Assembly: GCA_965240325.2 (NCBI GenBank)
Contig: OZ251225.1
Span: 744,001-808,000, forward strand
From: Rebecca billardiae RCC1528
Taxonomy: Eukaryota > Protista > Haptophyta
Direction: 5' to 3'
Length of the DNA: 64,000 nucleotides
Under the pieces are notes generated by a model, which saw nothing but the letters and a program-made list of their open reading frames with translations, made no database searches and was not told the DNA's origin. Shown here piece after piece: positions 7,201 to 64,000 of the stretch (position 1 is the first letter of the stretch; the number at the start of each line of letters is the position of its first letter). Position numbers and translations under genes: made by a program.

Positions 7201-7535
7201 CTCGCACGTATCGTGCCGACCGAGTCGAGTGGATGACGCTCGCGGCGGCTGCTCTTCAAATGACGCGGTCGGGCCCTTGGCGAGCTTGGGAGGAGGGCTC
7301 GGTCTGCTACATGTGCGTCAGTAGTCACGGCCTAAACCGTGCGCAAGACTCATTGAGTCGTACATGGCGCGGCAGCACGGCCGCACCCGCGGGGAACCGT
7401 GGGCGGGCAGCCATGCTCCAAAGGGCCGAAATGTAACACCAAGGTCAGTTTCCCGTGCAACCTGTCAACAGGTCTACACAATAAGCTACCCTATGGCCTA
7501 TCGATCTAGCTATGTGAATATCTATAATATAGATT

Positions 7536-7786
7536 CTATATCTATCTCTATCTCTATCTCTATCTCTATCTCTATCTCTATCTCTATCTCTATCTCTATC
7601 TCTATCTCTATCTCTATCTCTATCTCTATCTCTATCTCTATCTCTATCTCTATCTCTATCTCTATCTCTATCTCTATCTCTATCTGTATCTCTATCTATA
7701 TCTATATCTATATCTGTATCTGTATCTCTATCTCTATCTCTATCTCTATCTCTATCTCTATCTCTATCTCTATCTCTATCTCTATC

Positions 7787-7825
<39 letters not shown>

Positions 7826-8026
7826 ATCTCTATCTATATCTATATCTATATCTATATCTATATCTATATCTATATCTATATCTATATCTATATCTATATC
7901 TATATCTATATCTATATCTATATCTATATCTATATCTATATCTATATCTATATCTATATCTATATCTATATCTATATCTATATCTATATCTATATCTATA
8001 TCTATATCTATATCTATATATATATA
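7536..8026. repeat. Compound microsatellite (TATCTC)n/(TC)n/(TATATC)n
   Basis: Directly visible hexamer arrays. Confidence 0.98.
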
Positions 8027-11788: not shown

Positions 11789-11830
11789 TCTCGCCTGCCT
11801 GAGCTGTGTGCGTCTCTTATTCTTAGTAAA
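11789..11830 (+). repeat. Dispersed repeat motif shared with 51793-52034
   Basis: TCTCGCCTGCCTGAGCTGTGTGCGTCTCTTATTCTTA is the reverse complement of sequence at ~51936-51972 and, in part, ~51793-51823. Confidence 0.85.
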
Positions 11831-18682: not shown

Positions 18683-19235
18683 TGTCAAAGTCCAAGGCAG
18701 CCATCGGCGCCATTCCCCAGCTCGAGACTTTAATTCCAAGGCGCTGAGCAATTTCAGCCGCCAAGCTACAGACTTTCATCATGCAATTCAATCGGTTTCA
18801 CCATTCAAGAGCAAGGCCAACAGCAGCCATTGTTCATGCAAGTTACTACTCCAAAGATAAGGAGCATCGGCACACACATGAGGTCTTCGGACTACACATC
18901 CAAGGGTCCAGGGATTCTTCACCACTTGGGAAGGTACCCTGAACTGGACCAGAGACTACCATGCAGTCATCAGAACTTTCTTTTCATTTCGAGGAGACGT
19001 CCCGATCATCACAGGAAGCTTTCGTGCAATGACCCGAAGGCAATCAACGGAATTCCGAGAGCATTCCGACCGAGGAAAGCAGGCACACGAAGATTCCAAA
19101 ATCTTCGATGCCACTTCCATCAGCTTTCACCAGACTGAAACATCAGTTACCTGAAACCAGCCATCAGCAAGGGGGACGCCCCTTCGCCCCACGAAACACA
19201 GTAAGGACCGCACGACACGCGCGAAGCGCCAATCA
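18683..19235 (+). repeat. 5' LTR
   Basis: TGTCAAAG...GCCAATCA. Matches 25896-26448; I saw only one A/G difference. Confidence 0.97.
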
Positions 19236-25888: not shown

Positions 25889-25895
25889 GGGGGCG

Positions 25896-26448
25896 TGTCA
25901 AAGTCCAAGGCAGCCATCGGCGCCATTCCCCAGCTCGAGACTTTAATTCCAAGGCGCTGAGCAATTTCAGCCGCCAAGCTACAGGCTTTCATCATGCAAT
26001 TCAATCGGTTTCACCATTCAAGAGCAAGGCCAACAGCAGCCATTGTTCATGCAAGTTACTACTCCAAAGATAAGGAGCATCGGCACACACATGAGGTCTT
26101 CGGACTACACATCCAAGGGTCCAGGGATTCTTCACCACTTGGGAAGGTACCCTGAACTGGACCAGAGACTACCATGCAGTCATCAGAACTTTCTTTTCAT
26201 TTCGAGGAGACGTCCCGATCATCACAGGAAGCTTTCGTGCAATGACCCGAAGGCAATCAACGGAATTCCGAGAGCATTCCGACCGAGGAAAGCAGGCACA
26301 CGAAGATTCCAAAATCTTCGATGCCACTTCCATCAGCTTTCACCAGACTGAAACATCAGTTACCTGAAACCAGCCATCAGCAAGGGGGACGCCCCTTCGC
26401 CCCACGAAACACAGTAAGGACCGCACGACACGCGCGAAGCGCCAATCA
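25896..26448 (+). repeat. 3' LTR
   Basis: Copy of the 5' LTR, followed by TATAT. Confidence 0.97.
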
Positions 26449-36370: not shown

Positions 36371-36458
36371 CAGGCCTAGATCACCGTCACCGCGCCGCGG
36401 TGCGTCAGACTCGTCACTCGTCCCTCGAGACAGAGGGCGGTGAGGTCCAGACGCCGCC

Positions 36459-38937
36459 CGGCAGCGCTAAATCAGCCCGGGCCGATTTAAGCTTATCTCA
36501 GCCCGGGCCGATTTAAGCGCTTAAATCGGCCCGGGCTGAGATAAGCTCCGCGCGAGCTTATCTCAGCCCGGGCTGAGATAAGCGCTTATCTCAGCCCAGC
36601 GGCTCGCGACTCGGCCGCCGTGGACTCGGAGCGCACGTCGCGCGGTGCGGCCCGCCCGCTCCATGGCTGCACGCGCTGCTGTGTCTTCGGTGGCCACAGG
36701 GTGAAGTGTGCTGAGTCTAGTGGCGGGCCCAGCTCCACCCACCCCCTTCTCCCTGGCCCGCCCCGCCTGCCCTCGCCTGCATCGGATGCCTTCCTCGCGC
36801 ATGCAACGGCCTCAGCCAACGCCATTGTTCCACCATCGATTCCACCATCGACGGTCGCGGGTACTTGTACGTCGTGTGCTGTACATGTGTGTCATGTGTA
36901 ATCGCACGCATGTGGCCACGGCCCACGTGCACCTGTCTGCCGTGTGCCGTTGCCCTTGTACCACGTTGCCCTTGTACCGTTCGCGCGTTGCGGCATGTGC
37001 TTGCCCAGCTTGGCATACTTGCCGGTCACGCTCGACGCTGGATCAGCCAATCATCGCGATCCCGTCAGATCGAAACGGTCCCTTCGCGCGGCGCACTACT
37101 CTGCGCGGCGGCTGCCGGTTCACGACCGAGCTTGGACCATCGGCTGACAGCTGTGGTGTGCGGCTCGCTGCGTCTCAAGTGTGGCAGGCGCTTCGGCAGA
37201 GTAATACACTGTCGACGGTCGTGGCGCCGCAGCTGGTGGGCTCACCGGCGCCGTCGCGCTCGCAGCTTTCGGCGCGCTTGGCGAGCACGCCAAGGTCGCC
37301 GCGCGCACCGTGGTCCGCGTGCACACAACGGCCGCCGCGCGCGCCGCAGCCGTCTTGCGCGCCGCAGCCGGCGAGCGCGCCGCGGCCGGCGAGCGCGCCG
37401 CGGCTGCTGAGCGCGCCCGGCCGGCGAGCGCGCCGCGGCCGGCGAGTGCGCCGCGGCTGCTGCGCGCGCCCGGACGGTGAGCGCGCCGCGGCTGCCGCGC
37501 GCCGCGCGGCTGGCGATTGCGCCGCGGCTGCCACGCGCGCTGCGGCCGGTAAGCGCGCCACGGCGGCAGACAGCGTAACTCGGCCGTCGCGCCCGGCCGG
37601 CGAGCGCGCCGTGGCTGCTGCGCGCGCCGCGGCTGCCGCGCGCGCCGCGGCCGGCGAGCGCGCCGAGGCCGACCAACGCGCCGCGACCGCCCCGCGCACG
37701 GCGACCGAAGGCGAGTCTGTGGCGGATAGCGAGCTTGCCGCTGCGGCTAGTGAGCGCGCCGCAACCGGCGCGGATGGATGGTGCAGCCGGGGCTTGCGCC
37801 ACCGCGACCGGTGAGCAGGCCGCGCCAGCATGCGTAGGTATTGGCGAGCGCGCCACCGCAACCGGCGAGCGCGCACCGCACGGGCCACAGATGCCCATTG
37901 GCCCAACGCCGCAGGTGCCCATCAAGCCTGGCGCCAACACGTGACAGTTGCGCGATGAGGCTGAGCGTGCTCGCCGGCCGCTGCGCGCTCACTGGCCGCG
38001 GCGGCGCGCTCGCTCGCTATCCGCCACAGACTAGCCTTCGGTCGTCGCGCACGGCCGCGGCGCGCTGGTCCGCCGCGGCGCGCGCGGCAGCCACGGCGCG
38101 CGCGGCAACCGCGGCGCGCGCGGCGGCCACCGCGCGCGTGGCGCATGCGGCGGCCGTTGCGTGCGTGCGGACCGCGGCGCACACCGCAACCTTAGCTTGC
38201 TGTCCGTGCGCACCAGCCCCTGAGCCGCGGCACGCGCTGCGAGCTTGGCGTGCTCGCCGTGCGCGCCGACAGCTGCGGGCGTGCCGGCGTCGGCGCGCCC
38301 ACTAGCCGCAGCGCCATGATCGTCCATGGAGCTGCGCCGGTGCCCATGCCTGTGCCGCTGGCACCGGTACGCCCGCGCGCGGCGGCCGCGGTGGCAACGT
38401 TCAGCACATTTTGAACAACGTGCAATGGCAACAGCACACAACCGACTGTAGCGCACGGGCCGTGTTCACCCGCGTGCGACTACGCGCGGACATGGTCAAC
38501 TGGCGAACGTCGATGGTGCGTCCATGGTGTTGGCTGCATGCTTCTCATGCGGGCAGCAAGTCCACAAGCCGAGTTGCCGCCGTGGAGTTGCATGCGCGAG
38601 GAAGGCATCCGATGCGGGCGAGGGCAGGCGGGGCGGGCCAGGGAGAAGGGGGTGGGTGGAGCTGGGCGCCCGCCACTAGACTCAGCACACTTCACCCTGT
38701 GGCCACCGAAGACACAGCAGCGCGTGCAGCCATGGAGCGGGCGGGCCGCACCGCGCGACGTGCGCTCCGAGTCCACGGCGGCCGAGTCGCGAGCCGCTGG
38801 GCTGAGATAAGCGCTTATCTCAGCCCGGGCTGAGATAAGCTCGCGCGGAGCTTATCTCAGCCCGGGCCGATTTAAGCGCTTAAATCGGCCCGGGCTGAGA
38901 TAAGCTTAAATCGGCCCGGGCTGATTTAGCGCTGCCG
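36459..38937. mobile_element. Non-autonomous foldback/Mutator-like element
   Basis: ~350-bp near-perfect TIRs (36459-36807, 38587-38937) and 9-bp TSD GACGCCGCC. No transposase. GC-rich short-repeat interior. Confidence 0.92.
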
Positions 38938-39227
38938 GACGCCGCCGCCGCCGCCGTCGCCGGTGGATTCGCGCGCGAGGAACCGTTTGTGGCGGCGGAA
39001 ATGCGGACGAATGCGCGGGAGGGAGTAGGGACCGTGTGGCGTGTCCGTCGGACCGTGAGGGCTCTGAAGCAGCACTGACGCGCTGTCACATATATATGCA
39101 CACGTGTGCTCGTCAGGTAGCTAACTCATCAGTGACACGGTCACGGACACGGTGGTACGACCTGTCGACCACAGCGACAACTCTGAAACGGTGCTCGCAC
39201 ATCGCGCGCGTGACTGCTACTACTACT

Positions 39228-49414: not shown

Positions 49415-50120
49415 TATAATATACGGCCCGCCATTAACGACGTGGTATGCAACGGGCAGGCGTCAGAGTCAGCAAGCTGTAGCAGCAGATCGAGCAGCAG
49501 AGACAAACACCAGGATCAGCGCTCCTCGCCGTCGTCCCCCCCCCCCCTCGTAGTCGCCCAATGATAATTTTAAGCTACTCGGGTAACGTACTCTATAGTC
49601 ATAGTGAGGCGAAGTACCCGAAGTCTTGTAAAAGTGTCGCCTGTCGGGCTCAGGCTCGGACGATTTAGACTATACTCAGTGAGTGTGTCAGTTTGAGCCG
49701 TGTCAAAGGCCGGCCGGGTCGGCCGTCGGCCCGGCGGCCGTGCCCGTGGCGGCATGCAGCCAGTGCCTAGAGTGACGTACTGAATATTAATTGCTAATGA
49801 GTAGTTAAATTTATAATAATAATACCGCTGCTCATAATAATCTCACTAGTCACTGGCATCCGGACGTGTAACTACCGCTGTGCTCAATATATATATGCGT
49901 ATATATATATATATATATATACTTCTTGAAAAGTAATAATTCTATGCCGCGTGCACATGCGGCAGTCATGTGAGTCACTGAGTGTCAGTGAGTGCCGGGA
50001 CCGTACTTGACAGACTTGTGATCAGTGATGGCACCGGTTCACAGTGACCCGAATCGGCCACTTAGTCAATAATCAGCCATATAATTAACTGGCACGGCCT
50101 GGCCGCCGCCAGTGTCAAGT

Positions 50121-51254
50121 TCAAGGCCAAAAGTGTGCTCGTACCCCACTCTTGCGGAGTCTGGTCATCACCGACAGCGCATGGTCAACGGTGCCGCCGG
50201 TCAATCCGGCCGCCGACTCGTCTTGATGCCAGAACGGGTTGAGCCATGGCTCGTTGGGCGTATCAAAATGGTACTCGAAGAAGAACTCGTCGATTAGCCT
50301 CGATGCATTCGTGCCGCGTCGATTGGTGAGAACCTCGTCAACGAGCTCGTGTTCGACAGAGAAGGTGTCGATGTCGAGTTTGAACACGACAAAGTCTTCT
50401 TCGCTCGCCACCTCGGCGATGGTCAGGAGCGGGTCGCTGGCTGTGCCGGGGTATACCGGTACGTTGTAGAAGTGAAGCCGCGCGCGCTGCGCAAGGGGAA
50501 CATGCCGCCACCACCTCTTCGCCTCGTACTTCTTGGCTTCCCATGCCCATATGCCGTCGAAGTGGATGCACTGCCGGGCGTACAGTTGGACGAGAAGAGG
50601 GAGCGACGGGCCCTGCGCTGACGCCAAATCAGTCCGGCTGTTGGCCACATGCTTGCCCCAGTCTGCGCAGCCAGCATCAAAGAGCAGCGCTCGCTGTGGC
50701 CTGGCTGTGCTCGCCCATCGACCCTCAGCACCCGTCGCGGAGCAGCGCGAAGCGAGCACAAGATGGTCGACGCGCAGCAGGCCCTTCTTCACCATCTCGC
50801 GAGTGATCCGCTTCTTCTCGCTCTGCGTGGTAGGGCCTCTGCGGCCGGGTGGAAGGCTGCATCCGATGTCAGCATGCACCGGGTGGCGTGCGAAGCCGTG
50901 CAGAGGCTCGATCGGCTCCCAGGTGCACGGCTGGCTCGCATTCGATGCGGCACAGATCTCGATCTGCGACATGATATCCAGGTAGTCCGGCCCAGCGGCG
51001 CGTCTGCGGGCATGCAGCGACGAGTTCTGCGCGCCACGCAGCCTGGCGGCCACACGGACGGCGCGCTCTTGCAGACCCTGCTGCTTTGGGGCCTCTGCAA
51101 CCTCGCAGATGCGGCCATCCACCTTGCCCTCGAGGACCCACGGCCGCTCGGCCTCACTGACGTGGTAGAACACGCGCACGCCCCCAGACGCCGCCGAGGC
51201 ACGGGCTTGTTCAGCGGCAGCGCCAAGCACAGGGGCGAGCAGCCACCACACCAT
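50121..51254 (-). CDS. Secreted/Golgi FkbM-like (Methyltransf_21-type) protein
   Basis: Signal peptide MVWWLLAPVLGAAA. LLFDAGC, IWAWEA, DFVVFKLDID..EHELV, LIDEFFFEYH. Confidence 0.75.
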   Translation of the reverse strand: MVWWLLAPVLGAAAEQARASAASGGVRVFYHVSEAERPWVLEGKVDGRICEVAEAPKQQGLQERAVRVAARLRGAQNSSLHARRRAAGPDYLDIMSQIEICAASNASQPCTWEPIEPLHGFARHPVHADIGCSLPPGRRGPTTQSEKKRITREMVKKGLLRVDHLVLASRCSATGAEGRWASTARPQRALLFDAGCADWGKHVANSRTDLASAQGPSLPLLVQLYARQCIHFDGIWAWEAKKYEAKRWWRHVPLAQRARLHFYNVPVYPGTASDPLLTIAEVASEEDFVVFKLDIDTFSVEHELVDEVLTNRRGTNASRLIDEFFFEYHFDTPNEPWLNPFWHQDESAAGLTGGTVDHALSVMTRLRKSGVRAHFWP

Positions 51255-51609
51255 GGCGGCGCGGCTGGCCACAGCTTGGCTATACTGTACTGTACGTACG
51301 GCGGCTCCGCGGGGTAATCACAGTCCGCGCTTTCCCCTCTCCGCGCCCACGTCCGACCACGCCGCGCGCGCCAACGCGCGCGCACCACGAGATGAGAAAG
51401 AGAACCCACGCCGAGGCGTTTTGAGTTTTCAGCCCCCGGTGCCTATAATTTGGTACACGGGCCGTCCGGGCCCGCATTATGCCATAGCTTCAGTCCGGGA
51501 GCCAAGGAGGGTCGGAGGGACTGAACAGGAAGGTCCGGACTCGCTCGCACGCAGCCCGGCCTTCCGCCTTCACCGTGAAGGTGGCACAGTAAGTACAGTT
51601 TATTATAAT

Positions 51610-51779
51610 AATGTGTTTTAACGTGCGTAAGGCTCACGGTGGCAGGTAGTGCCGCGGCCATCCTTCATCGCACGCTCTCCGAAGAGAGACCTGGAAACTG
51701 GTTTTGAACCCATGACCTCAGACGCAAGAGCACGCCAGTAGGCTCCCTCTCCCACTCGCCGACTCGGCCACAGACCGGC
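51610..51779 (-). other. tRNA-derived Pol III-type (SINE-like) sequence
   Basis: Minus strand has A-box TGGCCGAGTCGG (51759-51770), B-box GGTTCAAAACC in a GAGGTCATGGGTTCAAA context (~51700-51719), then a CTCTC-TTCG-GAGAG hairpin. Confidence 0.5.
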
Positions 51780-51792
51780 GTTAAGAATACTG

Positions 51793-52034
51793 TAAGAGAC
51801 GCACACAGCTCAGGCAGGCGAGAGTGACGCCCGCCAACTGTCATCGCCCATGAAGCCGTCGCCGATGGTAGCGCCGCCGGAAAACTTCGGCCGTCCGCCT
51901 GCGAGGCCTGTACTCTGTAGACAGTTTACTAAGAGTAAGAATAAGAGACGCACACAGCTCAGGCAGGCGAGATCGTGACGCCCGCCAACTGTCACCGCCC
52001 ATGAAGCCGTCGCCGATGGTAGCGCCGCCGGAAA
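51793..52034. repeat. ~92-bp direct repeat (2 copies)
   Basis: TAAGAGACGCACACAGCTCAGGCAGGCGAGA..GGTAGCGCCGCCGGAAA at 51793 and 51942. Confidence 0.9.
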
Positions 52035-52899
52035 TATTCGTTCAGCCGTCCGCCTGCGAAGTGCGAGGCACGGCCTGGATGAGGGCTGGTCCTCGCCCCA
52101 CCGTCGTCCACAAAACGTCGTCGTCCGAACTCGCCGACTGGGCGCCGATGCGACAGCGCGCCGACAGGATGAGGATGTAGTAGTAGGGAATGTAGAGCCC
52201 CCGAGTATGCATGTATGGAGCGCTCCATTTCCCAGCGAAGTGCCCCAACTCGGCGGGGCTGGCACGCTCGGCACACGCTCCTGAGCGCTCGCTTCGCGGT
52301 GCGGCAGGCCTTGGATAGAATATGCAGACATGTCACGACCGCATTACCGGGCCATGCGCGCACCACATCCGCGCTACGTGGCCTGCGCGCTGGACGACTG
52401 AGAGTCAATGCCGACCCACTGCATTCAACTGCCCCGCATGCCCCCCGAGTCGCCTTCAGAGGGCGTCGACAAGCGCAGAGCGGGCGCGCGGGAGTTCGAC
52501 CAACTCGTGTACCTTCTTGCAAGCACCAGCGGCGATGTCGCAAGCCGAACCTTGACCAGCTGTGGAACTTCAACTTGAGCTGGTCGGCAGCAAAACAACG
52601 CATGGCCCCGGATCAAGTTAGCAGCGTGCGAGGAGGAGGCGCGGTGCGCGTCCGCAGCTGGCGAGAGGCGTCCGGACCGTGCCCTTCTCGGCCACGCCCG
52701 CGCGCTTCCCGCCGCCGCGGGCCCCGTGTACGCCCGTCGTCGCCCTCGCCGCGTGGGCGCCAAGCCGGGCTCAAGTGAGTTCCAACAAGCGCTCCATAGT
52801 GAGCGACACGTGCGGGAGCTCACGTAGACTGACGCAAAACACATCTTAACCTGATGCCCACCCCCGTGGTCTTCTACCGTATTTGCAAATAGGACAAAG

Positions 52900-53082
52900 T
52901 TCGGGCGCAAAGCCTCCAATCTTTGTATGTGTGGACTCGAGAGCGTCCAATCTTTGTATGTGTGGACTCGTTCGGGCGCAAAGCCTCCAATCTTTGTATG
53001 TGTGGACTCGAGAGCGTCCAATCTTTGTATGTGTGGACTCGTTCGGGCGCAAAGCGTCCAACCTTTGTATGTGTGGACTCGT
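52900..53082. repeat. Higher-order minisatellite: 25-bp unit with alternating linkers
   Basis: TCCAATCTTTGTATGTGTGGACTCG x5, separated alternately by AGAGCG and TTCGGGCGCAAAGC(C/G). Three units recur at ~57417-57512. Confidence 0.95.
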
Positions 53083-53338
53083 TTACTTGCATAGAAATCT
53101 TCCTCAAAATGTGGCGAGAAGTACCCACTTCGCTATGAGCCTGTGAATATGGCCACAGCGATGCCGCGAACCGTTTCGTTACGATAACCACCCTGCGCTC
53201 GCCTGGGCGCTCGTGGACGTGAGCAGTTCGAGCCTCCAGCAGTTGGCCGGTTCAACCTGGTGAGTTCCATCGCGTCGCACCGCCCGGAGGGCACGCACGA
53301 GACGTGGTGCCCCCGCCGGCGCTGTGGCGCTGGTCGCA

Positions 53339-56300
53339 ATGGGAGGGCCTCAACCTACTCCCAGGGCTGCCCTCGACGAGCTGCGTCGCGTCTATGGTTG
53401 CATCCCCGAGTGGATGGTCGACGAACGACTCCATGTTAAGCGCGCTCGGGGCGATGTCCTGCGTCTCGCGATGCCTCGACCTCGGGGGCTGCACGAGACG
53501 CTCGGGCTGCACATGCCGGGGGTGGACCCCCTCGACGCGTCGGCGACGCACATTGCCGTGCTCAAACGCGTCATGCGCTGCATTCCTGTGCACATGCGCG
53601 ACGCACATGGGTGCGTCAGACGCGCGCTGCGCGAGGCAAAGGCTCCGCCTCGCCCTCAGCGCGTCGCGCGATGCCGGCGCGCGACGCGCGGCCTCGATCT
53701 TCCTGACGTGGACAGCTTCGACGTGACGGGCACACAGATTGCCGTGCTGGAGCGCGTCGCGCGCTGCGTTCCCGCACACATGCAAGCCGTGCAAGCACGC
53801 GTGCAAGGCGCGCTGCGCGTGGCTCATCGCGATGACGATATTAAGCAGCGGCGCGCGCTGGTGGACTGGCGTGCGGGCGATCTGGCGCTGGCCACGGAAT
53901 CGTGCCTCGCACGCCGGCGCGCTCGCGACGAGCGAGCGCAACGCGCCGCGGCGCGCGCACGCGAGCGCGCGTGCCGATCCGGAGCAGGCTGGCACGTGTT
54001 CGAGGAGAATCCGGCGCGACGCGTTGGTGGCGGCGTGCGCAGGCGGCGTGCGCGGGCCAGCCGCCGCAGCACCCTGTCTCGGCGTCATGCGACATCCGAC
54101 GCGGTGCCCCGAGACACTGCCGAGATGTCGAGCGCGCCGCAGCACGCCGCGCTCGACCACGATTCGATTCGGTGCAAGGCGACCGCCGAGCAGCGCCGCG
54201 CGCTCAGCAGCATGCAAGCAGCAATGCGTGCTGACGGCGCAGGAGCCGATGCAGCACGGCGCAAGGCGTACGGCGCGGGCGTGCGCGCCGCGTGCACGGC
54301 GCTGCGCGTTTGCGCCTCGAACGCGCCCACTCTTCCCGAGGACGACGCGCTGCTCGAATCGGCGATGATGATCGCCGCGCGCGCTGGGCTGCTCTGGTTT
54401 GGCCGCGCGCCGCCATCGCAGCTGCTCGCACCACCACCTGCGGCTGGGGTGCAGGCCCTCTCTGCCGTCGCTCGCGCCTCGAAGGCGGAGTCGGGCTGGC
54501 GGGACGTGGCGTTTGCCGTCGCGCACGCGCGGCTGCGGCGTGAGCGCGCCGCGCGCGCCATTCAACGGCGCGCACGCCCGCTGTGGCGAATCCGCGGCAC
54601 CGCCGCTGGCGCGCGCGTGGAGTTGGGGCGTGCGCCGCGACGCGTGGGCGCGGTGCGCGGCGCGCTCGGCATCGTCTGCATGGAGCGGCGGCGCGCGCGG
54701 CTGCTGGCCGACGAGGAGATGCTGATGCCCGGTGGCGACTACTACTACACGCCGATGGCGTACGCGCCGGGTGCTATCGCCGGCGCCGAGCCCGCTTCGA
54801 CGCCGCCACCGCAGCTGCCGCCGTCGCACGACCGCATCGCGTCAACCTCTGCCGGGCAGCACTCGCGCTCAGCCTCGGGCTGCTGCTCTGCGGCAGGCTG
54901 CGCCGCGCGCGTGGGCCGCCCAGCGCCCGTGGCGGCGCACGTGCTGTACGCGGTGCCGTGCGCGCACGTTGGCGCACCGCATCGTGATCGTGCGGCGAGC
55001 GAGGCGGACACGGCGCCACCGTGCGGAGCTGGCGAGCACGGCGGGCACTTGGCGCCAAGTTTGGTGGCGCGGCCCGGCGCGCACGTGGACGGCGACTGGC
55101 TCAACGCGCGCGCGCGCGGCGGCGGCGCATCGCTGGCAGCGATGCTGGGCGTGGACGGATTGGCAACCGTCCGCGATATCATCGCGCGCTCCAAGTCCTC
55201 GAATTTCTCGGTCGAGCAGAGCCTCGCCGTGCTCGAGACCGGGCTGGGCTACGGCGCGGCCGCTGAGCATCCCGCGCTGAGCCGTGTCGCGCCAGACCTG
55301 ATCCGCAGGCATCGTCTCCGCCTGCGCGCGCTGCTGGGGAAGCACGCACCCACCGCCGTCCAGCGGCTCGACGCGCACCGCGCTTCAAGCGCACGCGGCG
55401 GCGCTGCTCCATCCGTATCGGCTGCGACGGCTGCCCCGCAGACCGACGCACACCGTGCCCCGAGCACGCGCGATGGCGCCGCAGTTGCTGATCACCGCGC
55501 GCCCCACCTGACGCGGTCGGAGTCGACGACGCGGCGTCCATCCACCACGCAGACGGAGGCTGACGGGAGCGCCATATCGTCGCCGCCGGCCACGTTGCTG
55601 CTGGAGGTCCTCGGCGCCCAGGCGCATGCGCGCGTGTGCGCGCTCATCAGCTCGCGCTCACAGTCCCAGCTCTTCTCGCTCGAGCAGAGCCTCGCGGTGT
55701 TGGAGACGGGTGTGGTCGGCGCGCCGCGTGGCGCGCACCCACTGCTCGAGGATTTCAAGCCGCAGCAGTGTCGCTCGCATCGCTGGGCGCTCCACCAGAT
55801 TTTGCGCGCCGAGTGCCCAGACGCGCTCGAGCGGCTGCGAGCCAAGGGCGTCGAGAGCGTGTCGCTTTCACCTGTGCAGCCGTCACAGCGTGCAGAGGCG
55901 GTGTCCGATGCGCTCTCGGTGGCGGTCGCGAGCGCAACGGCGCGTGCGACGACCACGCCGTTGGAGCAGCTCCTCGGCCACGAGGCGCATGCGTGCGTGC
56001 GCGCGCTCATCAGTTCACGCTCGCACTCGCAGCTCTTCTCGCTCGAGCAGAGCCTCGCCGTGTTGGAGACGGGCATTGTCGGCGCGCCGCGTGGCGCGCA
56101 CCCACTGCTCGAGGATTTCAAGCCGCAGCAGTGTCACTCGCATCGCTGGGCGCTCCACCAGATTTTGCGCGCCGAGTGCCCAGACGCGCTCGAGCGGCTG
56201 CGAGCCAAGGGCGTCGAGCAGCATCGCGTGCGCGCGGTCAAGCGGCCGCGGCCGTCCGAGGCGACGCCGAGCTGCACGTCGGGCGCGCGCGCTGCGCCGC

Positions 56301-57334
56301 GCGCCGCGCGCGCGTGTCCGGCCCCGGTGCAGCGCGCGCTCGGCGACGCGGGCTGCGCACAGCTGCTCGCAGTGCTCGAGGCGCACTCGACCGAGCTGTG
56401 CGTGCCGGTCGACGTGGCGCTCGAGGTGCTCTCCATGCAGATTGGCGGTCGCAGCGACACGAGCATGTCGCGGCGCTGTCGCCTGGCCCCGAAGCGCGAG
56501 CTCGCGCAGTGCGCACGCGAGCTGCGCGCGCTGCTGAGCGCGCACGCGCCCAGCGCGCACGCGCTCGTCTGGCCGATCAGCGCGCTGCCCGGCGCACGCC
56601 CGTCCGGCATCGACGCTGACGGCGCGGGCGCGCACGAGGCGGAGCCGTCGCCGATCGCCATGGACGTCGACGGCAGCGGCATCGACGCCGCGCACCCACG
56701 TGCCACCGCCGCCGCTGCTCGGGCTGACGCTCGCGACGCGCTCGCGCACGGGCCGGGAGCAGCAGCGCTGTGCGAGCGCGCGCCACGCGCCGCGTGCGGC
56801 GATGAGCAGCCGAGTGCCGAGCCGCCCGCCGCTCCGCAGCCCGCAGACTCGCCCGAGCGCGCATTCGCGCGCTTGCACGGCGCGCTTCGCACCATGCGCG
56901 ACGGGCGCGTGCTTCGCTTCTACATGCAGAACGACTCGACGTGGGACGTGGAGGCCGATCTCGCGCTGCTGCAGGCGCAGTACGCCTACGTGCTCAACCC
57001 GCGCGCGCGGCGCGCGTGGCCGGCGTTCGAGGGCAAGACGGCGAACGCGTGCGCGCTGCGCCTGCGGCGGCTGCGCAAGGTGATCGAGGAGGTCGAGCCG
57101 GGTCTGCTCGCCACGCTCTTTCCCGCCGACGCCGACGACGAGCTGCGCGAGCTGGTGAGGCGCTGCGCCGACCCGGCCGAGCGCGCCAGGCTGTGCTCGG
57201 CTCACACGGGGCCGCTGCCGAGCGCGACGGCCGCGCTGCGCGAGGCGACGGCAGGGCTGCCCGAGGCGCATCGGGCGGAGGCGCTGCGGCTCCTCCGCGT
57301 CGAGTTCGACACGGGTATGAACATTTGGGATTGA
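53339..57334 (+). CDS. Large hypothetical protein with two kinds of internal repeat
   Basis: ~1330-aa open frame. Repeats conserved at protein level (IAVLxRVxRCxPxHM x2-3; LG..FSxEQSLAVLETG..HP..HR..L..L..A..RL x3 clear plus 2 diverged). Confidence 0.7.
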   Translation: MGGPQPTPRAALDELRRVYGCIPEWMVDERLHVKRARGDVLRLAMPRPRGLHETLGLHMPGVDPLDASATHIAVLKRVMRCIPVHMRDAHGCVRRALREAKAPPRPQRVARCRRATRGLDLPDVDSFDVTGTQIAVLERVARCVPAHMQAVQARVQGALRVAHRDDDIKQRRALVDWRAGDLALATESCLARRRARDERAQRAAARARERACRSGAGWHVFEENPARRVGGGVRRRRARASRRSTLSRRHATSDAVPRDTAEMSSAPQHAALDHDSIRCKATAEQRRALSSMQAAMRADGAGADAARRKAYGAGVRAACTALRVCASNAPTLPEDDALLESAMMIAARAGLLWFGRAPPSQLLAPPPAAGVQALSAVARASKAESGWRDVAFAVAHARLRRERAARAIQRRARPLWRIRGTAAGARVELGRAPRRVGAVRGALGIVCMERRRARLLADEEMLMPGGDYYYTPMAYAPGAIAGAEPASTPPPQLPPSHDRIASTSAGQHSRSASGCCSAAGCAARVGRPAPVAAHVLYAVPCAHVGAPHRDRAASEADTAPPCGAGEHGGHLAPSLVARPGAHVDGDWLNARARGGGASLAAMLGVDGLATVRDIIARSKSSNFSVEQSLAVLETGLGYGAAAEHPALSRVAPDLIRRHRLRLRALLGKHAPTAVQRLDAHRASSARGGAAPSVSAATAAPQTDAHRAPSTRDGAAVADHRAPHLTRSESTTRRPSTTQTEADGSAISSPPATLLLEVLGAQAHARVCALISSRSQSQLFSLEQSLAVLETGVVGAPRGAHPLLEDFKPQQCRSHRWALHQILRAECPDALERLRAKGVESVSLSPVQPSQRAEAVSDALSVAVASATARATTTPLEQLLGHEAHACVRALISSRSHSQLFSLEQSLAVLETGIVGAPRGAHPLLEDFKPQQCHSHRWALHQILRAECPDALERLRAKGVEQHRVRAVKRPRPSEATPSCTSGARAAPRAARACPAPVQRALGDAGCAQLLAVLEAHSTELCVPVDVALEVLSMQIGGRSDTSMSRRCRLAPKRELAQCARELRALLSAHAPSAHALVWPISALPGARPSGIDADGAGAHEAEPSPIAMDVDGSGIDAAHPRATAAAARADARDALAHGPGAAALCERAPRAACGDEQPSAEPPAAPQPADSPERAFARLHGALRTMRDGRVLRFYMQNDSTWDVEADLALLQAQYAYVLNPRARRAWPAFEGKTANACALRLRRLRKVIEEVEPGLLATLFPADADDELRELVRRCADPAERARLCSAHTGPLPSATAALREATAGLPEAHRAEALRLLRVEFDTGMNIWD

Positions 57335-58083
57335 CGCAAAACACATCTTAACCTGATGCCCACCCCCGTGGTCTTCTACCGTATTTGCAAATAGGACAAA
57401 GTTCGGGCGCAAAGCCTCCAATCTTTGTATGTGTGGACTCGAGAGCGTCCAATCTTTGTATGTGTGGACTCGTTCGGGCGCAAAGCCTCCAATCTTTGTA
57501 TGTGTGGACTCGAGAGCGTGAGCGACACGTGCGGGAGCTCACGTAGACTCATATTCTATGATTTAACGACACAGGTAGGACGACGCGGGTCTCCTGATTC
57601 GTCGGCGGCAGTGCCCGATCGTCGACACGAAGTCGGCGTTGGTGGCAGAGCATAGCCTGCACCGCGATCGGATTGCTTGAGCGCGGCCTTGAGCTGCTGG
57701 AGCGCGATCCACCTGCGCTGCGCGGCTCGCAGTCGCATGGCCCTGCTGTGCCCCGAGCGAGGGCGATGGTGCAGGTCCGGATGTCAGCTGGCAGTCTCAG
57801 CCGCTGGTGGCAGCTGGTCGAGCCTGCCCCGTGCTCCCCGAGCGGTCGCGTACGCGCCTGCCGCTCGAGCCAGCTGGCTGGCTGGCGGCGGCTGGCGCTG
57901 CGGCGTCGTCCAGGGTGCGCTTCGTCCGCTGCTGCTCACACGTACGCTGCGATCGACCGCCCTTTCCGGACATAATATATGATATATTGATAATACATAT
58001 ATATATATATATATTAATCGTATGCTCCAAGAATAGTAATTCATCACGCGCGACACGCACTCGTCAGTCAGCATCGATCATCA

Positions 58084-61000
58084 TCATCGGAATAATTCAC
58101 TGGATCCACCGGCCAGCACCCACTGCAGGCAGCGGCCTGTCATGGACGCGAGCGTCTCGTTGATCGTGTTGCCCACCGTCGCGCCAAAGTGCACCGTGCG
58201 CCGCGCCGCCGAGTCCAGCCCGAGGCACGTGAGCGTGAGCAGCGGCTCGACGAGCGCGAGCCGCTGCGCCTCGGCGAGCCCCCAGCTGAGCATCATGCGC
58301 CGCGTCTTGGCGCGGCCGAAGCGGTAGCCGTACGCGAGCGCGGAGAGGCAGCACGCGCACACCGTCGCGACCGAGATGAGCCAGCCGAGAGCCGTGCGCA
58401 AGCGCGCGCCGCACGCCGCCGCGCACGCCGCGCGCACGCACAGCGGCGCGCGCGCGCGCCCGCGCTCGGCGCGGCGCACGCGCGCGCGCGCCTCGTCTTC
58501 CACGCGCGCCGCGTACCAGCCGCACAGCGCGCGGAACGAGACCGCGCCGCCGTCCGCCTCGTCCGCCGCCGCGAGCTGCGCGGCCGCGCGCGCCGCGCGC
58601 ACCTTTCCAAAGCCGAGCTCCTCGAGGAAGCGGCGCGCGGTGAGCGGGTGCAACGCGCCCGAGAGCGTCGGGTCTGCGAGCACGAAGCGGTAGCGCAGCA
58701 GCGAGGCGGAGGCGGAGTCGAGGCCGCTCGCGTGCGGCGCGGAGGAGAGCACCGAGAGCGAGGCGAGCGTGGCGTTGGTCAGCTCGGACGCCTCCGCCAC
58801 CGACACACCCGCGTCGTCGGTCGCGGCCGCCGCGCGCTGCGTGCCGTGCTCCTCGCTGGTGACCGAGAGGCGCCACGCGCGCACGCCCGGCGGCGCGGGC
58901 GACAAGCCGCCGGCGGCGCGCAGCCGCTCCGCCTCGGTCGGCGCCTCGAAGCGCGAGCCCGCCGAGGGCAGGTACTGCTGCGACAGCGGGGCAGAGAGGG
59001 CGCGCGTGCTGCGCAGCGCGAGCGCCGCCGACTCGGCGGAGCCGTCCGAGCCGCGAGAGCCGCGGCGCTGCTGCAGGCGCGGCCGACCGCCCGGGGACGA
59101 GGGCGGCAGGCGCAGCTGCAGCCGCGCGCCCACGCGCGCGCGGACCCACTCCCCGCCCGCCGGGCTGTGCGGCGGCGGCACCGGCTCTGCCGCCGCGCGC
59201 AGCGGCACGACCCGATCGGCCGAGCCCGCGTCGCCGCGGCCGGCCGGCGGCGGCGGCGCGGGCGGCGGCGGCGAGAAGGGCGGCGTGCGCGGCGACGCGG
59301 CGGAGGCGGCTGAGCGGCTGTCGCGTGATGAGACGTCGGCCGAGCGGCCGCGCACGCTGCCGCTCGGCTCGCTCGGCCGCGCCCACAGCAGCGGCGGCGA
59401 CAGCCTGCCGCCCGAGTGCTGCGGCGATGCCCACGCCAGCGCGACACTCGAGTTGGAGTGAGCGCTCGACAGCCGGACGGCGGCGCGGCTGCTCGGGCCC
59501 GTGTGCCGCGCGGTGGACAGACGCGAGGAGGACTGCTCAGACACCCACCCGCCCGGCACGCCGCCGCCCAGCTCCGGCTCGGACGGCCGGCTGCAGCTGC
59601 CTGCGCTCGGGGAGCGCGCGCCCGCGTGGCCGCGGCTGCCGTCGCGGCCGGCCGCGCCCGGCCGCGCGCCACCGTCGCCGCGCTGCGCGCGCGGCGGCGG
59701 CGCGCGCGGCGAGTCGGCCGCGAGTGACAGCGCCCGCATCGGCGAGCAGAGCGCGCCCTCGCCCTCGCCCTCGCCCTCGCCCTCAGCCTCGGGCTCGTGC
59801 GGCTGCGGCGGCAGCACGAGCGGGCGGCGCGCCTCGCCCACCAGTGTGGGCAGCGGCCTGGGCGGCGTGTCTGGCGGGCTCACGAGCGCCGCCGGCTGGC
59901 GCTCCGCGTATGGCAGCGGCGAGGCGGGCGCCGCTGCGGCCGACGGCGGCGCGGGCGGGCGGGCGGGCGCGCGGCGCGCGCCCGCCGAGCCTCGGCGCGA
60001 GCTGCGCATGCGCGCCGTGTGCTCGCGGAGCGCGCGCTCGGTCAGCGGCGTCGGCAGCGTCGGCGTCGGTGGGACCCGAGCGCGCGCGGGCTCCGAGGCG
60101 GGCGGCGCGCCCGCCGCGCCCGCCGCGCCGCCACCGCCGGGCAGCTCGTCGGCGGAGACGCGCGAGCGCACGCCATCAGCGTGCTCGCCCGCGGCCACGC
60201 GCGACAGCACCGCGCGCGCGCTCAGAGGGCCCCCGCGCCGCTCCGACGCGGAGCTCGACTCGCTCCCCTCGCACGCGGGCGCGCGCTCGGCGGCGCGAGC
60301 CGCGACCGCGGCGGGCGGGACGGCGGCGGCCGGGGCAGGCGAGCGGCCCTGCCGGCTCGAGCGGCGCGCGGGCAGCACGCGCTCGTTGACTGCGCCGCCG
60401 CCCCAGCCGCGCGGCTGCGCGGCGTCGCGCGGCGTGGGCGTGGGCGGCTGCGCGTGCGCGAGCGCCGCCGCGCGCACACGCACCGCCTCTGCGTACACCA
60501 GCCGCGCGCGCTCCGCTCGGCCCAGCAGCTTGGCCGGCGCATCCGCGGGCGTGCGGCTGCGCGCAAACAGCGCCTTGACGACGCCCAGCAGCGGCGCGCT
60601 GAGCAGCGCGGTCGTCGCCGCGGCGAGCAGCTCGTGGATCAGGACGATGGGCGCGCCCTCGGGCGCGTCGTCGTACTGCGCGCACGAGAGCACGAGCCCG
60701 AGCGCCGCCGCCGCCCAGAAGAGGATGGCGAGCTCGGAGGGCAGCAGCAAGGGCTCGCGCCGGCCGAGCAGCGCGCCGAGCAGCGTGTGCTCGGCGCCCG
60801 CGCGGCTGGCGAGCGCGCGCGCGAGCCCGAGCGCGTCCACGCCGCTCAGCCGGCGCGTGGGCGCCCACAGCGCCGCGAGCCGCGAGCGCTTGCCACCGCC
60901 GCCGCCGCCAGGCAGCGTGCTCGCCGCGTGCGACTCCGCCTCGTCGAGCGCCGCGCGGCGCGCGAGCAGCCCGCGGACGTACCGCTGGATCTCGCACGCG

Positions 61001-64000
61001 GCGTGCTGCTCGGTGAGGGCGGCGAGGAGCGCGGGCGAGATCGAGTCGCCGTCCTGCGCGCCGCCGGCCGAGGCGGGCGCGCGGGGCGCGCGCGTGCCGT
61101 GCATGCTGAGCGCGCGCCGGAACGCGAGCAGCGGAGGCGGCGCCGCCGCCGCGGACGCGTCGGTCGCGCCGCCGTCGTCCGCAAAGACCAGCGCCGCGCC
61201 CCTCCGCGCCTTGTGCCTCTCGCGGCAGCCGAGCGTGCACACGGACGCGAGGCACGCCGCGGCGAGGCTGCCGATCAGCGCGTGCAGCGTGGGGTCGCGC
61301 TCGGCCGCGGGCGCGAGCAGCGCGCCCGCCACGTCGTCCGCGCCGAGCGGCTCGAGCCTGAACGCCTTGGCGTCGTCGAGCGCGTCCGCCGCCGAGTCGG
61401 GCACGTCGAGCGCCACGCCGGCAAACTCGGTGAGGTGGTCGCACGCGCACCAGAGGAGCGCGGAGCCTGCGTCGGGCGGCAGCGTGGCGCACCCGTCGGC
61501 CACCCACGCGCCGCGCGCCTCGTCCCACCAGCGGCACTCCGTCACCGCGCCCGCCGCCGCCGCCGAGCCGTTCGGAGCGCCCGCCGCGGCCGGCGGCGGC
61601 GGCGGGATGCCGAGCAGCAGCGGCTCGGCCAGCGCCGAGATGGCCAGCGCCGAGCCGCTGGCCGCGGAGGCGAGCGTGACCGAGAAGACGCTCGTCGCAG
61701 TGGGCGTGGGCGCCGAGCCGTTCAGCGCCGCGTCCGCCGCCGGCGCGCGCAGGCCCGCCCTGCCCACGCTCCACAGCAGCACGTCCACGCCCGAGCCGCC
61801 CAGCGCCGACGCGTCGACGCCGGCGAGCGCGCTGCGCGGCACGCGCAGCGCGCCCGCGCCGCCCGCGGCGGCGAGGCTGGCGTTGAGCAGCGCGGACGGC
61901 GTGAGCCGCACCGCCGACACATTCAGCGCCCCGCCCACCAGCGCCACGGGCGGGTCGCCAGCCAGCGCGCCCACCAGCAGTGCAGACGCCAGCCCCTCCG
62001 CGGCGGAGGCGGCGGCCGCGCCCACCGCCGCCGCGTCCGCGGCCGCGAGCTCGGTCGCGGGCGCGCCGAGCGTGGCGTTGAGCGCGCTCAGCAGCGCGGC
62101 GCTCTCGGCAGCGCCCACGCCCGTCGTCGCCGCCGCCGCGCCGATCGCCGCCGCCTGCGCCAGCGCGCTCAGCTGCATCTCGCCCGTCGCGAGCGCCGCC
62201 GGCGGCGCGGCGCTCACAACCGCCTGCAGCGTGAAGGTGGCGTGTGCGCGCGACTCCGCCTCCTGCAGGGCGCCCGCGCGCGCGGCGCCCGCGCTGAGCT
62301 GGAGGAGCGAGAGCGAGACGGCCGCCTCCGCGGCGAGGGACGCGTTGGCGGGCGCGGGGCCGCCCAGCTCCGCGGCGATCGCGCCGGCGAGCTGCAGCGA
62401 GCGAGTCGTGTCGCCCGCTGCGAGCGCGAGCTGTGCGCGCGCCACCGCCGCGCTCACGGCCGCGTCTGCCACCGCGCCGCCCGAGCCGGGCACGGCGGCG
62501 TCGGCGGCGTCGGCGCGGAGCGAATACACGCGCACGAATGCCGCCGCGCGCGCGCTCGCGCCGAGCGCGTCCGCCACGCGCACGTACAGCGTGCGGTTGC
62601 CCGCGGGCAGCAGCGCGAGCGCGTGCGCCGAGCGCTGCGCCGCGCCGAGCGCCGCGGCCGCGCCCTCGTCCGCGGCCGCGTGCGAGAAGGCGTAGCTGAG
62701 CGGCAGGTCGTCCGCGTCGTCGTCCGTCCAGCTGTCCGCGCGCAGCGCGAACACGGTGAGCGCCGCGATCCCGCGCTCCGGCGAGACCGCCAGCCCGCCG
62801 CCGTGCGGCGGCCGGTTGACCACCACGACCAGCTCCGCGACCGCCGCGCGGCCGGCCGCGCCGTCCGCGCGCCGCGTCGCGCGCACCTCGAACGCGTAGG
62901 TCGCGCCCGGGCTGAGCGCGCCGCTGCGGAAGCCGAGCGCGGGCTGCGCAGCGCCCGTCGTCGTGACGGCGGACGTGTCCGCTAGCTCGAGCGGCGCGGG
63001 CGCGCGCGCGCCGCCCGCGCCCACGAGCCACGCGCGCCACACAAAGTCGTGCGCCGCCTCCGCGTCCGCGCCGTCGGCGAGCTCGGCGTCCGCGGCGGCG
63101 TCGATGGTGGCGCGGAGGACGAGGCGGCCGCTGCTGCGCTCCCACGTGGGCGCGACCTTGCGCGTGCCGAGTGGCACGAGGCGCAGCGCCGGCAGCGGCG
63201 CCGATGCCGCCGCCACGTCCACCCTTGCCTCCGCCTCCGCGGGCGCGAGCGCGGGCGTGCCGGGCGCGGACACGAGCACGCGCACGAGATACGCCGCGCC
63301 GTGCGGCAGCGCGCCCGGCGGCAGCAGCAGCGTGGGCGAGGTGGCGTTGGCGAGGTCGAGCTCGACGGGCGCGCCGTCGGACGCGCGCGCCACCGCCCAC
63401 GCGAACGCGAGCCCGCCGCCCGCCGCCTCGTTCGGGTTGGCCGAGGCGGAGGCGTCCAGCCGCACCGCGTCGGCGCCGCCCACGCGCGCGGCGCTCGGCG
63501 TGAGCGCGGCGCGCAGCGGCAGGTACGGCACGCGCAGCGAGACGTCGGCGCTCGCGCTGAGCTCGGGCGCGGCGGCCATTGTCGCGAGCACGCGCAGCGT
63601 GTACGCGTGCCCCGCGCTCAGCGACCACGGCGGCAGCCGCAGCGTCGCGCCGGCGGCGTCGCTCAGGTCGGGCACGCGCGGCGCCGCGGCACTCGGCGCG
63701 GCCATGCCGCTGCGGTCGACGTCGTCGTCGCGCGTCACGTTGAGCACCGCCCAGCCGAAGCGCACCTGCGCGGAGAGCGTGGATGGCCAGCACGGGGACA
63801 GACCGACGTTCGCCGAGAGACGCACGGCGCTGCCCGCGCGCGCGAGCACGCCCGACGACCGCCCATCCACCTCGACGCTCGGGCCGTCCGGCGGCGCGCG
63901 CGCCACGGCGTGCGTCGCGGGCGCGGACGCGATGCCGAGCGCGGAGGTGAGGACGAGGGAGAAGACGAAGCCGCCCTCGGCGCCGAGCGCGGACGGGCCG
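58084..64000 (-). CDS. Polycystin-1-like REJ + GAIN/GPS membrane protein (5' end beyond window)
   Basis: REJ-like LDASAS..FAW, VNRPPHGG..VSP..F..WTDD..DLPLSYAF. GPS CRWWD..W..DGC..CACDHLTEFA. Several TM helices. IQ-like EIQRYVRGLLARR. Confidence 0.85.
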   Translation of the reverse strand, partial: GPSALGAEGGFVFSLVLTSALGIASAPATHAVARAPPDGPSVEVDGRSSGVLARAGSAVRLSANVGLSPCWPSTLSAQVRFGWAVLNVTRDDDVDRSGMAAPSAAAPRVPDLSDAAGATLRLPPWSLSAGHAYTLRVLATMAAAPELSASADVSLRVPYLPLRAALTPSAARVGGADAVRLDASASANPNEAAGGGLAFAWAVARASDGAPVELDLANATSPTLLLPPGALPHGAAYLVRVLVSAPGTPALAPAEAEARVDVAAASAPLPALRLVPLGTRKVAPTWERSSGRLVLRATIDAAADAELADGADAEAAHDFVWRAWLVGAGGARAPAPLELADTSAVTTTGAAQPALGFRSGALSPGATYAFEVRATRRADGAAGRAAVAELVVVVNRPPHGGGLAVSPERGIAALTVFALRADSWTDDDADDLPLSYAFSHAAADEGAAAALGAAQRSAHALALLPAGNRTLYVRVADALGASARAAAFVRVYSLRADAADAAVPGSGGAVADAAVSAAVARAQLALAAGDTTRSLQLAGAIAAELGGPAPANASLAAEAAVSLSLLQLSAGAARAGALQEAESRAHATFTLQAVVSAAPPAALATGEMQLSALAQAAAIGAAAATTGVGAAESAALLSALNATLGAPATELAAADAAAVGAAAASAAEGLASALLVGALAGDPPVALVGGALNVSAVRLTPSALLNASLAAAGGAGALRVPRSALAGVDASALGGSGVDVLLWSVGRAGLRAPAADAALNGSAPTPTATSVFSVTLASAASGSALAISALAEPLLLGIPPPPPAAAGAPNGSAAAAGAVTECRWWDEARGAWVADGCATLPPDAGSALLWCACDHLTEFAGVALDVPDSAADALDDAKAFRLEPLGADDVAGALLAPAAERDPTLHALIGSLAAACLASVCTLGCRERHKARRGAALVFADDGGATDASAAAAPPPLLAFRRALSMHGTRAPRAPASAGGAQDGDSISPALLAALTEQHAACEIQRYVRGLLARRAALDEAESHAASTLPGGGGGGKRSRLAALWAPTRRLSGVDALGLARALASRAGAEHTLLGALLGRREPLLLPSELAILFWAAAALGLVLSCAQYDDAPEGAPIVLIHELLAAATTALLSAPLLGVVKALFARSRTPADAPAKLLGRAERARLVYAEAVRVRAAALAHAQPPTPTPRDAAQPRGWGGGAVNERVLPARRSSRQGRSPAPAAAVPPAAVAARAAERAPACEGSESSSASERRGGPLSARAVLSRVAAGEHADGVRSRVSADELPGGGGAAGAAGAPPASEPARARVPPTPTLPTPLTERALREHTARMRSSRRGSAGARRAPARPPAPPSAAAAPASPLPYAERQPAALVSPPDTPPRPLPTLVGEARRPLVLPPQPHEPEAEGEGEGEGEGALCSPMRALSLAADSPRAPPPRAQRGDGGARPGAAGRDGSRGHAGARSPSAGSCSRPSEPELGGGVPGGWVSEQSSSRLSTARHTGPSSRAAVRLSSAHSNSSVALAWASPQHSGGRLSPPLLWARPSEPSGSVRGRSADVSSRDSRSAASAASPRTPPFSPPPPAPPPPAGRGDAGSADRVVPLRAAAEPVPPPHSPAGGEWVRARVGARLQLRLPPSSPGGRPRLQQRRGSRGSDGSAESAALALRSTRALSAPLSQQYLPSAGSRFEAPTEAERLRAAGGLSPAPPGVRAWRLSVTSEEHGTQRAAAATDDAGVSVAEASELTNATLASLSVLSSAPHASGLDSASASLLRYRFVLADPTLSGALHPLTARRFLEELGFGKVRAARAAAQLAAADEADGGAVSFRALCGWYAARVEDEARARVRRAERGRARAPLCVRAACAAACGARLRTALGWLISVATVCACCLSALAYGYRFGRAKTRRMMLSWGLAEAQRLALVEPLLTLTCLGLDSAARRTVHFGATVGNTINETLASMTGRCLQWVLAGGSSELFR

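Follow-up and report, generated by a model that had tools for sequence, protein, structure and literature searches.

We analysed a 64,000-nucleotide stretch of the haptophyte Rebecca billardiae RCC1528 (assembly GCA_965240325.2, contig OZ251225.1, positions 744,001 to 808,000 of the forward strand), referred to below as the window, which holds an insert carrying a long open reading frame (ORF). The window is nuclear eukaryotic DNA of 58-81% GC. Long single-exon genes surround the insert and encode a BTB-BACK-MATH protein, an ABC transporter, ERO1, LCAT, eIF-1A, an LRR protein and a REJ/GPS polycystin-like protein. The insert sits in a 1.7-kb intergenic spacer, between a transcription start at 51640 and the end of the REJ/GPS gene, whose stop codon lies at 58084. 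Its layout is X-Y-ORF-Y-X, in which X and Y are each an exact two-copy direct repeat in the window, and its flanks occur only once in the window and show no relation to the insert.

Architecture of the insert and its target site

X is a sequence of 32 nt (GTGAGCGACACGTGCGGGAGCTCACGTAGACT) that occurs exactly twice in the window with 0 mismatches (Table 1), and two such matches were obtained in 0 of 100 shuffles. Y is 188 nt long, and its copies at 52830-53017 and 57332-57519 show 0 differences; across X and Y together, 220 nt are free of differences. Y begins with (T)GACGC and ends with GAGAGCGT, and its terminal sequences are GACGCAAAAC... at one end and the minisatellite end at the other. 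It has 68 unique nt, after which a minisatellite begins whose 71-nt unit is made of a 31-nt and a 40-nt sub-unit. The 24-nt core of the minisatellite (CCAATCTTTGTATGTGTGGACTCG) has five copies on the left but three on the right, and the right Y thus stops part-way through the minisatellite. Host and insert sequences overlap by one base (T) at the left junction and by two bases (GT) at the right junction, and the duplicated target is therefore 29-32 bp. The initial annotation had described this layout, with an X of 29-32 bp and microhomology at both junctions, a Y of 188 bp without visible differences, a right Y ending within the minisatellite that continues on the left, and an ORF stop codon (TGA, 57332-57334) supplied by the start of Y. 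All of these descriptions were confirmed; the stop codon straddles the Y boundary.

The inserted piece is 4,687-4,690 bp, which corresponds to 1.04 head-to-tail units of a 4,502-bp sequence, so its template should have been circular, tandem or terminally redundant. The 4,502-bp unit consists of a 506-nt non-coding part (the 68 unique nt, the minisatellite and a leader) and one 4-kb ORF. Since X precedes Y at the left end and follows it at the right end, no duplication of a contiguous segment can produce this order, which argues for insertion of Y-Z-Y, Z being the sequence between the two Y copies, together with a target-site duplication (TSD). From the arrangement of the repeats, the structure is best read as a single insertion of Y-Z-Y into a site with one X, duplicating X, and this is also the simplest reading. 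The insertion is real and recent, as the geometry and the identity of the repeats show. Partial tandems are known to upset assemblies (PMC8557442), and a fault of the assembly might produce a similar picture, for instance if a repeat had been collapsed or wrongly joined, or if a circular molecule had been patched into the chromosomal sequence. However, mis-joins do not usually leave nested repeats that agree perfectly, as X and Y do, or junctions as clean as these, and the adjoining sequence is 100% identical to independent RNA-seq contigs. An artefact is thus highly unlikely.

X contains the inverted hexamers GTGAGC and GCTCAC around CACGTG, which form a small palindrome. Exact direct repeats of 15-60 bp at the ends of an element are typical of att cores, and X might be such a core if a 4,719-bp circle (X plus Y-Z-Y) had been integrated in trans by a tyrosine or serine recombinase, as in Crypton-like elements. 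We consider this site-specific recombination very unlikely, because it leaves the truncated Y beside X unexplained and because no recombinase is encoded in the insert or the window; in particular, no tyrosine recombinase was found among the ORFs of the insert. The hallmarks of DIRS and Ngaro elements, namely split direct repeats, inverted terminal repeats with an internal complementary region and a tyrosine recombinase ORF, are also absent, and a TSD is present. In the repeat comparison, neither terminal inverted repeats between the insert ends nor an internal copy of the termini was found. The fold energy of X, and of Y on either strand, was no better than that of shuffled sequences.

The target looks like ordinary GC-rich non-coding DNA. 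On the minus strand of the restored empty site there are two ORFs of 134 and 128 codons, separated by a stop codon. The initial annotation regarded them as a decayed reading frame that is rejoined when the insert is removed, but we rejected this reading. The frame has flat GC across its codon positions (0.65/0.68/0.70) and no Pfam match, and it was therefore taken as non-coding. A 10-mer shared between the flank and the insert (GTGAGTTCCA) turned out to be a chance match.

Table 1. Features of the insert and its duplicated target (positions in the window)
Feature	Coordinates	Strand	Evidence and remarks
X, left copy; duplicated target (TSD), 32 nt	52799..52830	.	Exact two-copy repeat, shuffles; last T ambiguous with the insert
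Y, left copy; terminal redundancy of 187 nt (188 with the shared T at 52830)	52831..53017	+	Identical to 57333-57519; unique 68 nt (52831-52898) and first 119 nt of the minisatellite
Minisatellite, 2.6 copies of the 71-nt unit with five CCAATCTTTGTATGTGTGGACTCG cores	52899..53083	+	Tandem Repeats Finder, core search
Leader from the minisatellite to the first ATG (255 nt)	53084..53338	+	Short upstream ORFs only; in-frame stop at 53261-53263 (translation)
Long ORF, 1331 codons from the first ATG (1336 from GTG at 53324), stop TGA 57332-57334	53339..57334	+	ORF list
Two N-terminal repeats of ~49 aa (53491-53637, 53677-53823)	53491..53823	+	70% nucleotide identity
Five tandem helical modules of ~90 aa (55124-55393, 55583-55858, 55949-56221, 56321-56575, 56849-57124)	55124..57124	+	Alignment, re-scan with a hidden Markov model
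Y, right copy	57333..57519	+	Provides a 188-nt trailer and the last two bases (GA) of the stop codon; ends inside the minisatellite; last GT overlaps X
X, right copy; duplicated target (TSD)	57518..57549	.	Exact two-copy repeat

The long ORF and its product

The ORF of 1336 codons far exceeds the longest ORF in 300 shuffles (812 codons), and its GC at the three codon positions (0.775/0.596/0.829) follows a pattern like that of host genes. Its product is a protein of 142 kDa with a pI of 10.1, rich in Ala and Arg and predicted to be all-helical, and the first 450 residues have a net charge of +42. Each of the ~90-residue modules contains the motif FSxEQSLAVLETG, and a re-scan of the window with a hidden Markov model of the module found these five copies and no others. 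The AlphaFold2 (AF2) model of the module has four helices (predicted local distance difference test score, pLDDT, 79), while that of the N-terminal half was unusable (pLDDT 46).

Relatives of the protein were not found in any of the collections searched. Nucleotide comparisons for further copies covered the 64-kb window, and the wider collections consisted of proteins and of metagenome and viral contigs. About 15 billion proteins contained no relative. No homologue was detected by a word-indexed search with the full-length protein or with a 361-aa piece, and exhaustive phmmer comparison of 1200 aa with 1.84 billion cluster representatives revealed no relative. No Pfam or PHROG family was recognized in the long ORF, and no related locus was seen among the metagenome and viral contigs. 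The module model had no match in PDB or BFVD by Foldseek; profile search of the module gave a weak match to the harmonin-like domain of RTEL1 (E=0.23), which is a lead only. Look-ups of the exact products of the ORF and two flank ORFs returned nothing, and the neighbouring gene alone was retrieved, from two RNA-seq assemblies. Whichever mechanism placed it here, the protein, in which a 90-residue helical module is present five times, represents a family without known relative. Because the product is basic and helical, it may be an RNA-binding or packaging protein with an ORF1-like role, which is a guess from composition only.

Domains of reverse transcriptase (RT), DDE transposase, tyrosine recombinase, HUH or GIY-YIG type were found neither in the long ORF nor in the ten next-longest ORFs on both strands. 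Pfam domains are likewise absent from all ORFs on either strand of the insert, so the statement of the initial annotation that no mobility enzyme is encoded holds.

ARAGORN called a 90-nt tRNA-Ile(GAT) at 56624-56713 on the minus strand, within the long ORF. Since none of the Rfam families attained its gathering score at any place in the window, the call is probably false, and we judged this tRNA to be spurious.

The compactness of the unit, of which the ORF takes up 89%, raises the question of whether a small episome or virus-like replicon, a 4.5-kb circle, has been integrated. Its minisatellite would then represent iterons or an origin, and the 142-kDa orphan would be a replication or integration factor of a new type. 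The single ORF, the compact 506-nt control region with five 24-nt iterated cores and the basic protein without known relative agree with this idea, and circular replicons usually integrate in a form longer than one unit. However, no Rep, helicase, polymerase or integrase signature was found in the ORF product with Pfam and PHROG, and the structure models show no enzyme fold. Features of a Rep-encoding circular replicon such as a CRESS virus or plasmid are missing, with no Pfam, PHROG or structural match. The GC content and codon-position pattern are those of the host nucleus, and nothing similar exists in the viral contigs; the Y core and the minisatellite array also had no match in the viral and metagenome contig collections. 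An integrated episome is therefore quite improbable in our estimation. Even less credence is given to the idea that the 4.5-kb unit is a previously undescribed eukaryotic mobile or episomal element, which would use its own 142-kDa orphan protein as integration or replication factor, have a circular or multimeric intermediate and duplicate ~30 bp of its target, and which would match no described transposon superfamily.

Possible routes of insertion

Penelope-like elements (PLEs) carry pseudo-long terminal repeats (pLTRs), which originate when a 5'-truncated copy precedes a full one and which have known lengths of 181-218 bp (PMC8557442, PMC3846280, PMC8969392). The insert is also a partial head-to-tail tandem with direct pseudo-LTRs, as its exact repeat is 188 nt and its length is 1.04 units. 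In Pen3a of Adineta vaga, a host nonribosomal peptide synthetase (NRPS) gene is flanked by pLTRs and a TSD and has been mobilised in trans (PMC3846280). The pLTR-NRPS-pLTR structure resembles the present insert in that a non-RT gene lies between direct repeats of ~200 bp within a partial head-to-tail tandem and a TSD is present, the enzyme for Pen3a acting in trans. Non-autonomous Chlamys elements also carry pLTRs (PMC8557442). The Chlamys PLEs of green algae, such as MRC1, share with the insert an algal host, non-autonomy, pLTRs, head-to-tail insertions and the lack of a canonical hammerhead. Since this anatomy (pLTRs, trans-mobilised non-RT genes and algal non-autonomous families) is the closest described, target-primed reverse transcription in trans, yielding a PLE-like partial tandem, is the explanation that we rank first, although only tentatively.

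Target-primed reverse transcription in trans would proceed as follows. The template would be longer than one unit, that is, a multimeric or terminally redundant RNA; multi-copy PLE transcripts have been reported (PMC11167929). RT and endonuclease would be supplied in trans, as in PLE partial tandems. A duplication of ~30 bp calls for staggered cuts, and RNA copied at staggered nicks ~30 bp apart would leave the 29-32-bp duplication of X. If the template were read in the sense of the ORF, it would be an mRNA-like RNA that starts at Y position 1, includes the 506-nt leader and the ORF, and ends 188 nt beyond the stop codon. If it were antisense, the fixed 3' end of the unit would be the complement of Y position 1. 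The initial annotation took the truncated right Y as a sign that the ORF is antisense to the mobilised RNA. Y-Z-Y, however, can be divided on either strand just as well into (Y)(ZY) as into (YZ)(Y), and because of this symmetry the truncated right Y gives no evidence of the template strand, while the ORF-sense reading yields an ordinary mRNA-like layout. Thus, the interpretation of the initial annotation stands as far as an insertion with TSD, head-to-tail redundancy and resemblance to PLE pLTRs are concerned, and its antisense template and decayed target frame do not; the mobility of the insert and an RNA route are putative.

Target-primed reverse transcription in trans is also supported by the intact ORF, the X-Y...Y-X order and the unique flanks. 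LINE and LTR elements exist in the related Diacronema lutheri genome (PMC8379373), and a copia element with near-identical LTRs lies in the window; both count in favour of this route.

Several observations, however, weigh against it. The TSD of 29-32 bp exceeds the 0-10 bp given for PLEs in PMC3846280, and PLEs of haptophytes were not reported in the published PLE survey. No RT with GIY-YIG domain is present in any frame of the insert or in other ORFs of the window, and no RT, GIY-YIG or other partner was found in the window except the copia element. The optional 30-40-bp tail of PLEs is missing, and there is no poly(A), A-rich or simple-repeat tail at either junction. X has the right size for a PLE tail, and we considered it as such, but its copies stand, in direct orientation, on the outer side of Y at both ends. 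In each of the tandem copies a tail would come after the 3' end of the unit, and X stands on the wrong side of Y at one end; X is therefore not a PLE tail. No hammerhead or other ribozyme was detected in an Rfam scan of 52300-58100 at E<=5, which gave two chance-level matches only, to a snoRNA and a miRNA; Naiad and Chlamys elements also have no hammerheads (PMC8557442, PMC3846280, PMC8969392). Neither a second copy of the insert nor an empty site was found in the 64-kb window, and a single copy is known. Fragments of the ORF are absent from the protein libraries, and since these include RNA-seq assemblies from the source organism, this suggests that the ORF is not detectably expressed in those assemblies. 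Overlaps of 1-2 nt at the junctions, finally, are equally typical of DNA repair.

The closest relatives in structure also differ from the insert. The TSD of Pen3a is 8-10 bp or absent, its pLTRs come from an identified PLE family whereas no PLE is known for the insert, and its cargo is a member of a host gene family rather than an orphan ORF. Unlike the Pen3a system, the insert has no inverted pLTR, 30-40-bp tail or hammerhead. Chlamys PLEs share 3' ends with autonomous partners, are multi-copy and mostly occur as short 5'-truncated inserts, and they target microsatellites, whereas the target of the insert is not a microsatellite.

The same junctions can be explained at the DNA level without transposition machinery. 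In a template switch of the type known as microhomology-mediated break-induced replication (MMBIR) or fork stalling and template switching (FoSTeS), synthesis would move onto a tandem or circular 4.5-kb donor and return 32 bp upstream; alternatively, a piece of a rolling-circle or extrachromosomal circular DNA (eccDNA) concatemer would be captured at a staggered break. The 1-2-nt overlaps, together with nearby short similarities (GACT/GACG on the left and GAGCGT/GAGCGA on the right), are typical of repair, and the return offset would give the duplication of X without an endonuclease. The lack of an encoded mobility enzyme or ribozyme, the single visible copy and the host-like composition of the ORF point in the same direction. 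On the other hand, this route requires a pre-existing tandem or circular donor, and none was seen. End-joining capture does not normally produce duplications of 30 bp. The position of the break is a further difficulty. Only ~11% of random breaks (506 of 4,502 nt being non-coding) would spare the ORF, and the left end of the insert coincides exactly with the ORF stop codon, where a random break is expected in ~5 of 4,502 cases; a defined template end is favoured over a random break by these two facts. We regard a DNA-level event as somewhat unlikely and rank it second.

Other classes of element were compared with the insert. Read in the sense of the ORF, the insert is comparable to R-leader-ORF-R with an R of 188 nt, as in the terminally redundant RNA of LTR retroelements and pararetroviruses. 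It differs from these in having no U3/U5 regeneration, primer-binding site (PBS), polypurine tract (PPT), TG..CA ends, 4-6-bp TSD or RT. A PBS-like stretch starting with TGG after the minisatellite was inspected and did not match a tRNA 3' end. HAL1 (half-L1) elements are non-autonomous LINEs (long interspersed nuclear elements) that keep a large non-RT ORF, but their ORF1 is recognisably related to L1 ORF1 and their copies end in poly(A), neither of which is true of the insert. Compared with LINE retrocopies in general, no A-rich tail is seen at the junctions, while a long variable TSD and junction microhomology are compatible. Helitrons are not matched either, since the ends are unfit on both strands, a TSD is present and neither Rep nor helicase is encoded. 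For DDE transposons with terminal inverted repeats, the inverted repeat and the DDE domain are missing and the TSD is ~30 bp. In retrozymes and retrocopies of circular RNA, an RT acting in trans copies circular or multimeric RNA into tandems or into inserts of more than one unit length (PMC7761336; a 2026 bioRxiv preprint). They are small, non-coding and hammerhead-bearing, whereas the insert is 4.5 kb, coding and ribozyme-free.

If other copies of the insert exist, it would be a candidate for the first gene-carrying partial-tandem retroelement in haptophytes, of which the published PLE survey has none. Its long TSD would then be informative about target cutting and resolution by Penelope-type enzymes, and its presence would show the spread of an orphan 4-kb gene in a streamlined and very GC-rich algal genome. 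If it arose by a single repair event, it would cleanly illustrate how a circular or tandem donor is copied into a chromosome in nature.

Neighbouring genes and other repeats of the window

Among named proteins, the ERO1 protein of the window is nearest to those of D. lutheri (60% identity) and Pavlovales sp. CCMP2436 (57%). The D. lutheri genome has 73% GC, 45% single-exon genes and LTR and LINE repeats (PMC8379373). The composition and gene structure of the window agree with this published genome, which fits a Pavlovales-like haptophyte other than D. lutheri.

The gene adjacent to the insert on the left (50124-51254, minus strand) encodes a 377-aa secreted-looking protein without a Pfam domain. 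Two Logan RNA-seq contigs (ERR14847151 and ERR14847148) match 49536-51640 at 100%, and since both begin at 51640, this position marks the transcription start of the gene. A literature search returned no mention of the run accessions. Immediately upstream of this start, a 150-bp tandem duplication contains two copies of a 31-38-nt motif (TAAGAGACGCACACAGCTCAGGCAGGCGAGA...), which occurs exactly at 51793-51823 and 51942-51973 on the plus strand and at 11788-11825 on the minus strand. On the other side of the insert, the REJ and GPS ORF of 1940 codons (58084-63906, minus strand), which encodes a polycystin-like receptor, has ~80% GC and a GC3 of 0.96; its opposite strand contains very long spurious ORFs.

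A young copia-type LTR retrotransposon occupies 18683-26448 and is inserted in a (TA)n tract. It has TG..CA LTRs of 553 bp with 1 mismatch, a 5-bp TSD (TATAT) and an ORF of 2217 codons with RVT_2 and retroviral SH3-like domains. This element represents the canonical pattern in this genome, and the X-Y-ORF-Y-X insert is unlike it in every structural respect. A foldback-like structure of 2.5 kb (36452-38944) adjoins the start of the ERO1 gene. It ends in inverted arms of ~356 nt, which show 99% complementarity, are made of 28-nt palindromic sub-repeats and enclose 18-nt tandem repeats, these being inverted as well. A hexanucleotide microsatellite, (TCTATC), with ~81 copies and a 98% match, lies at 7535-8019.

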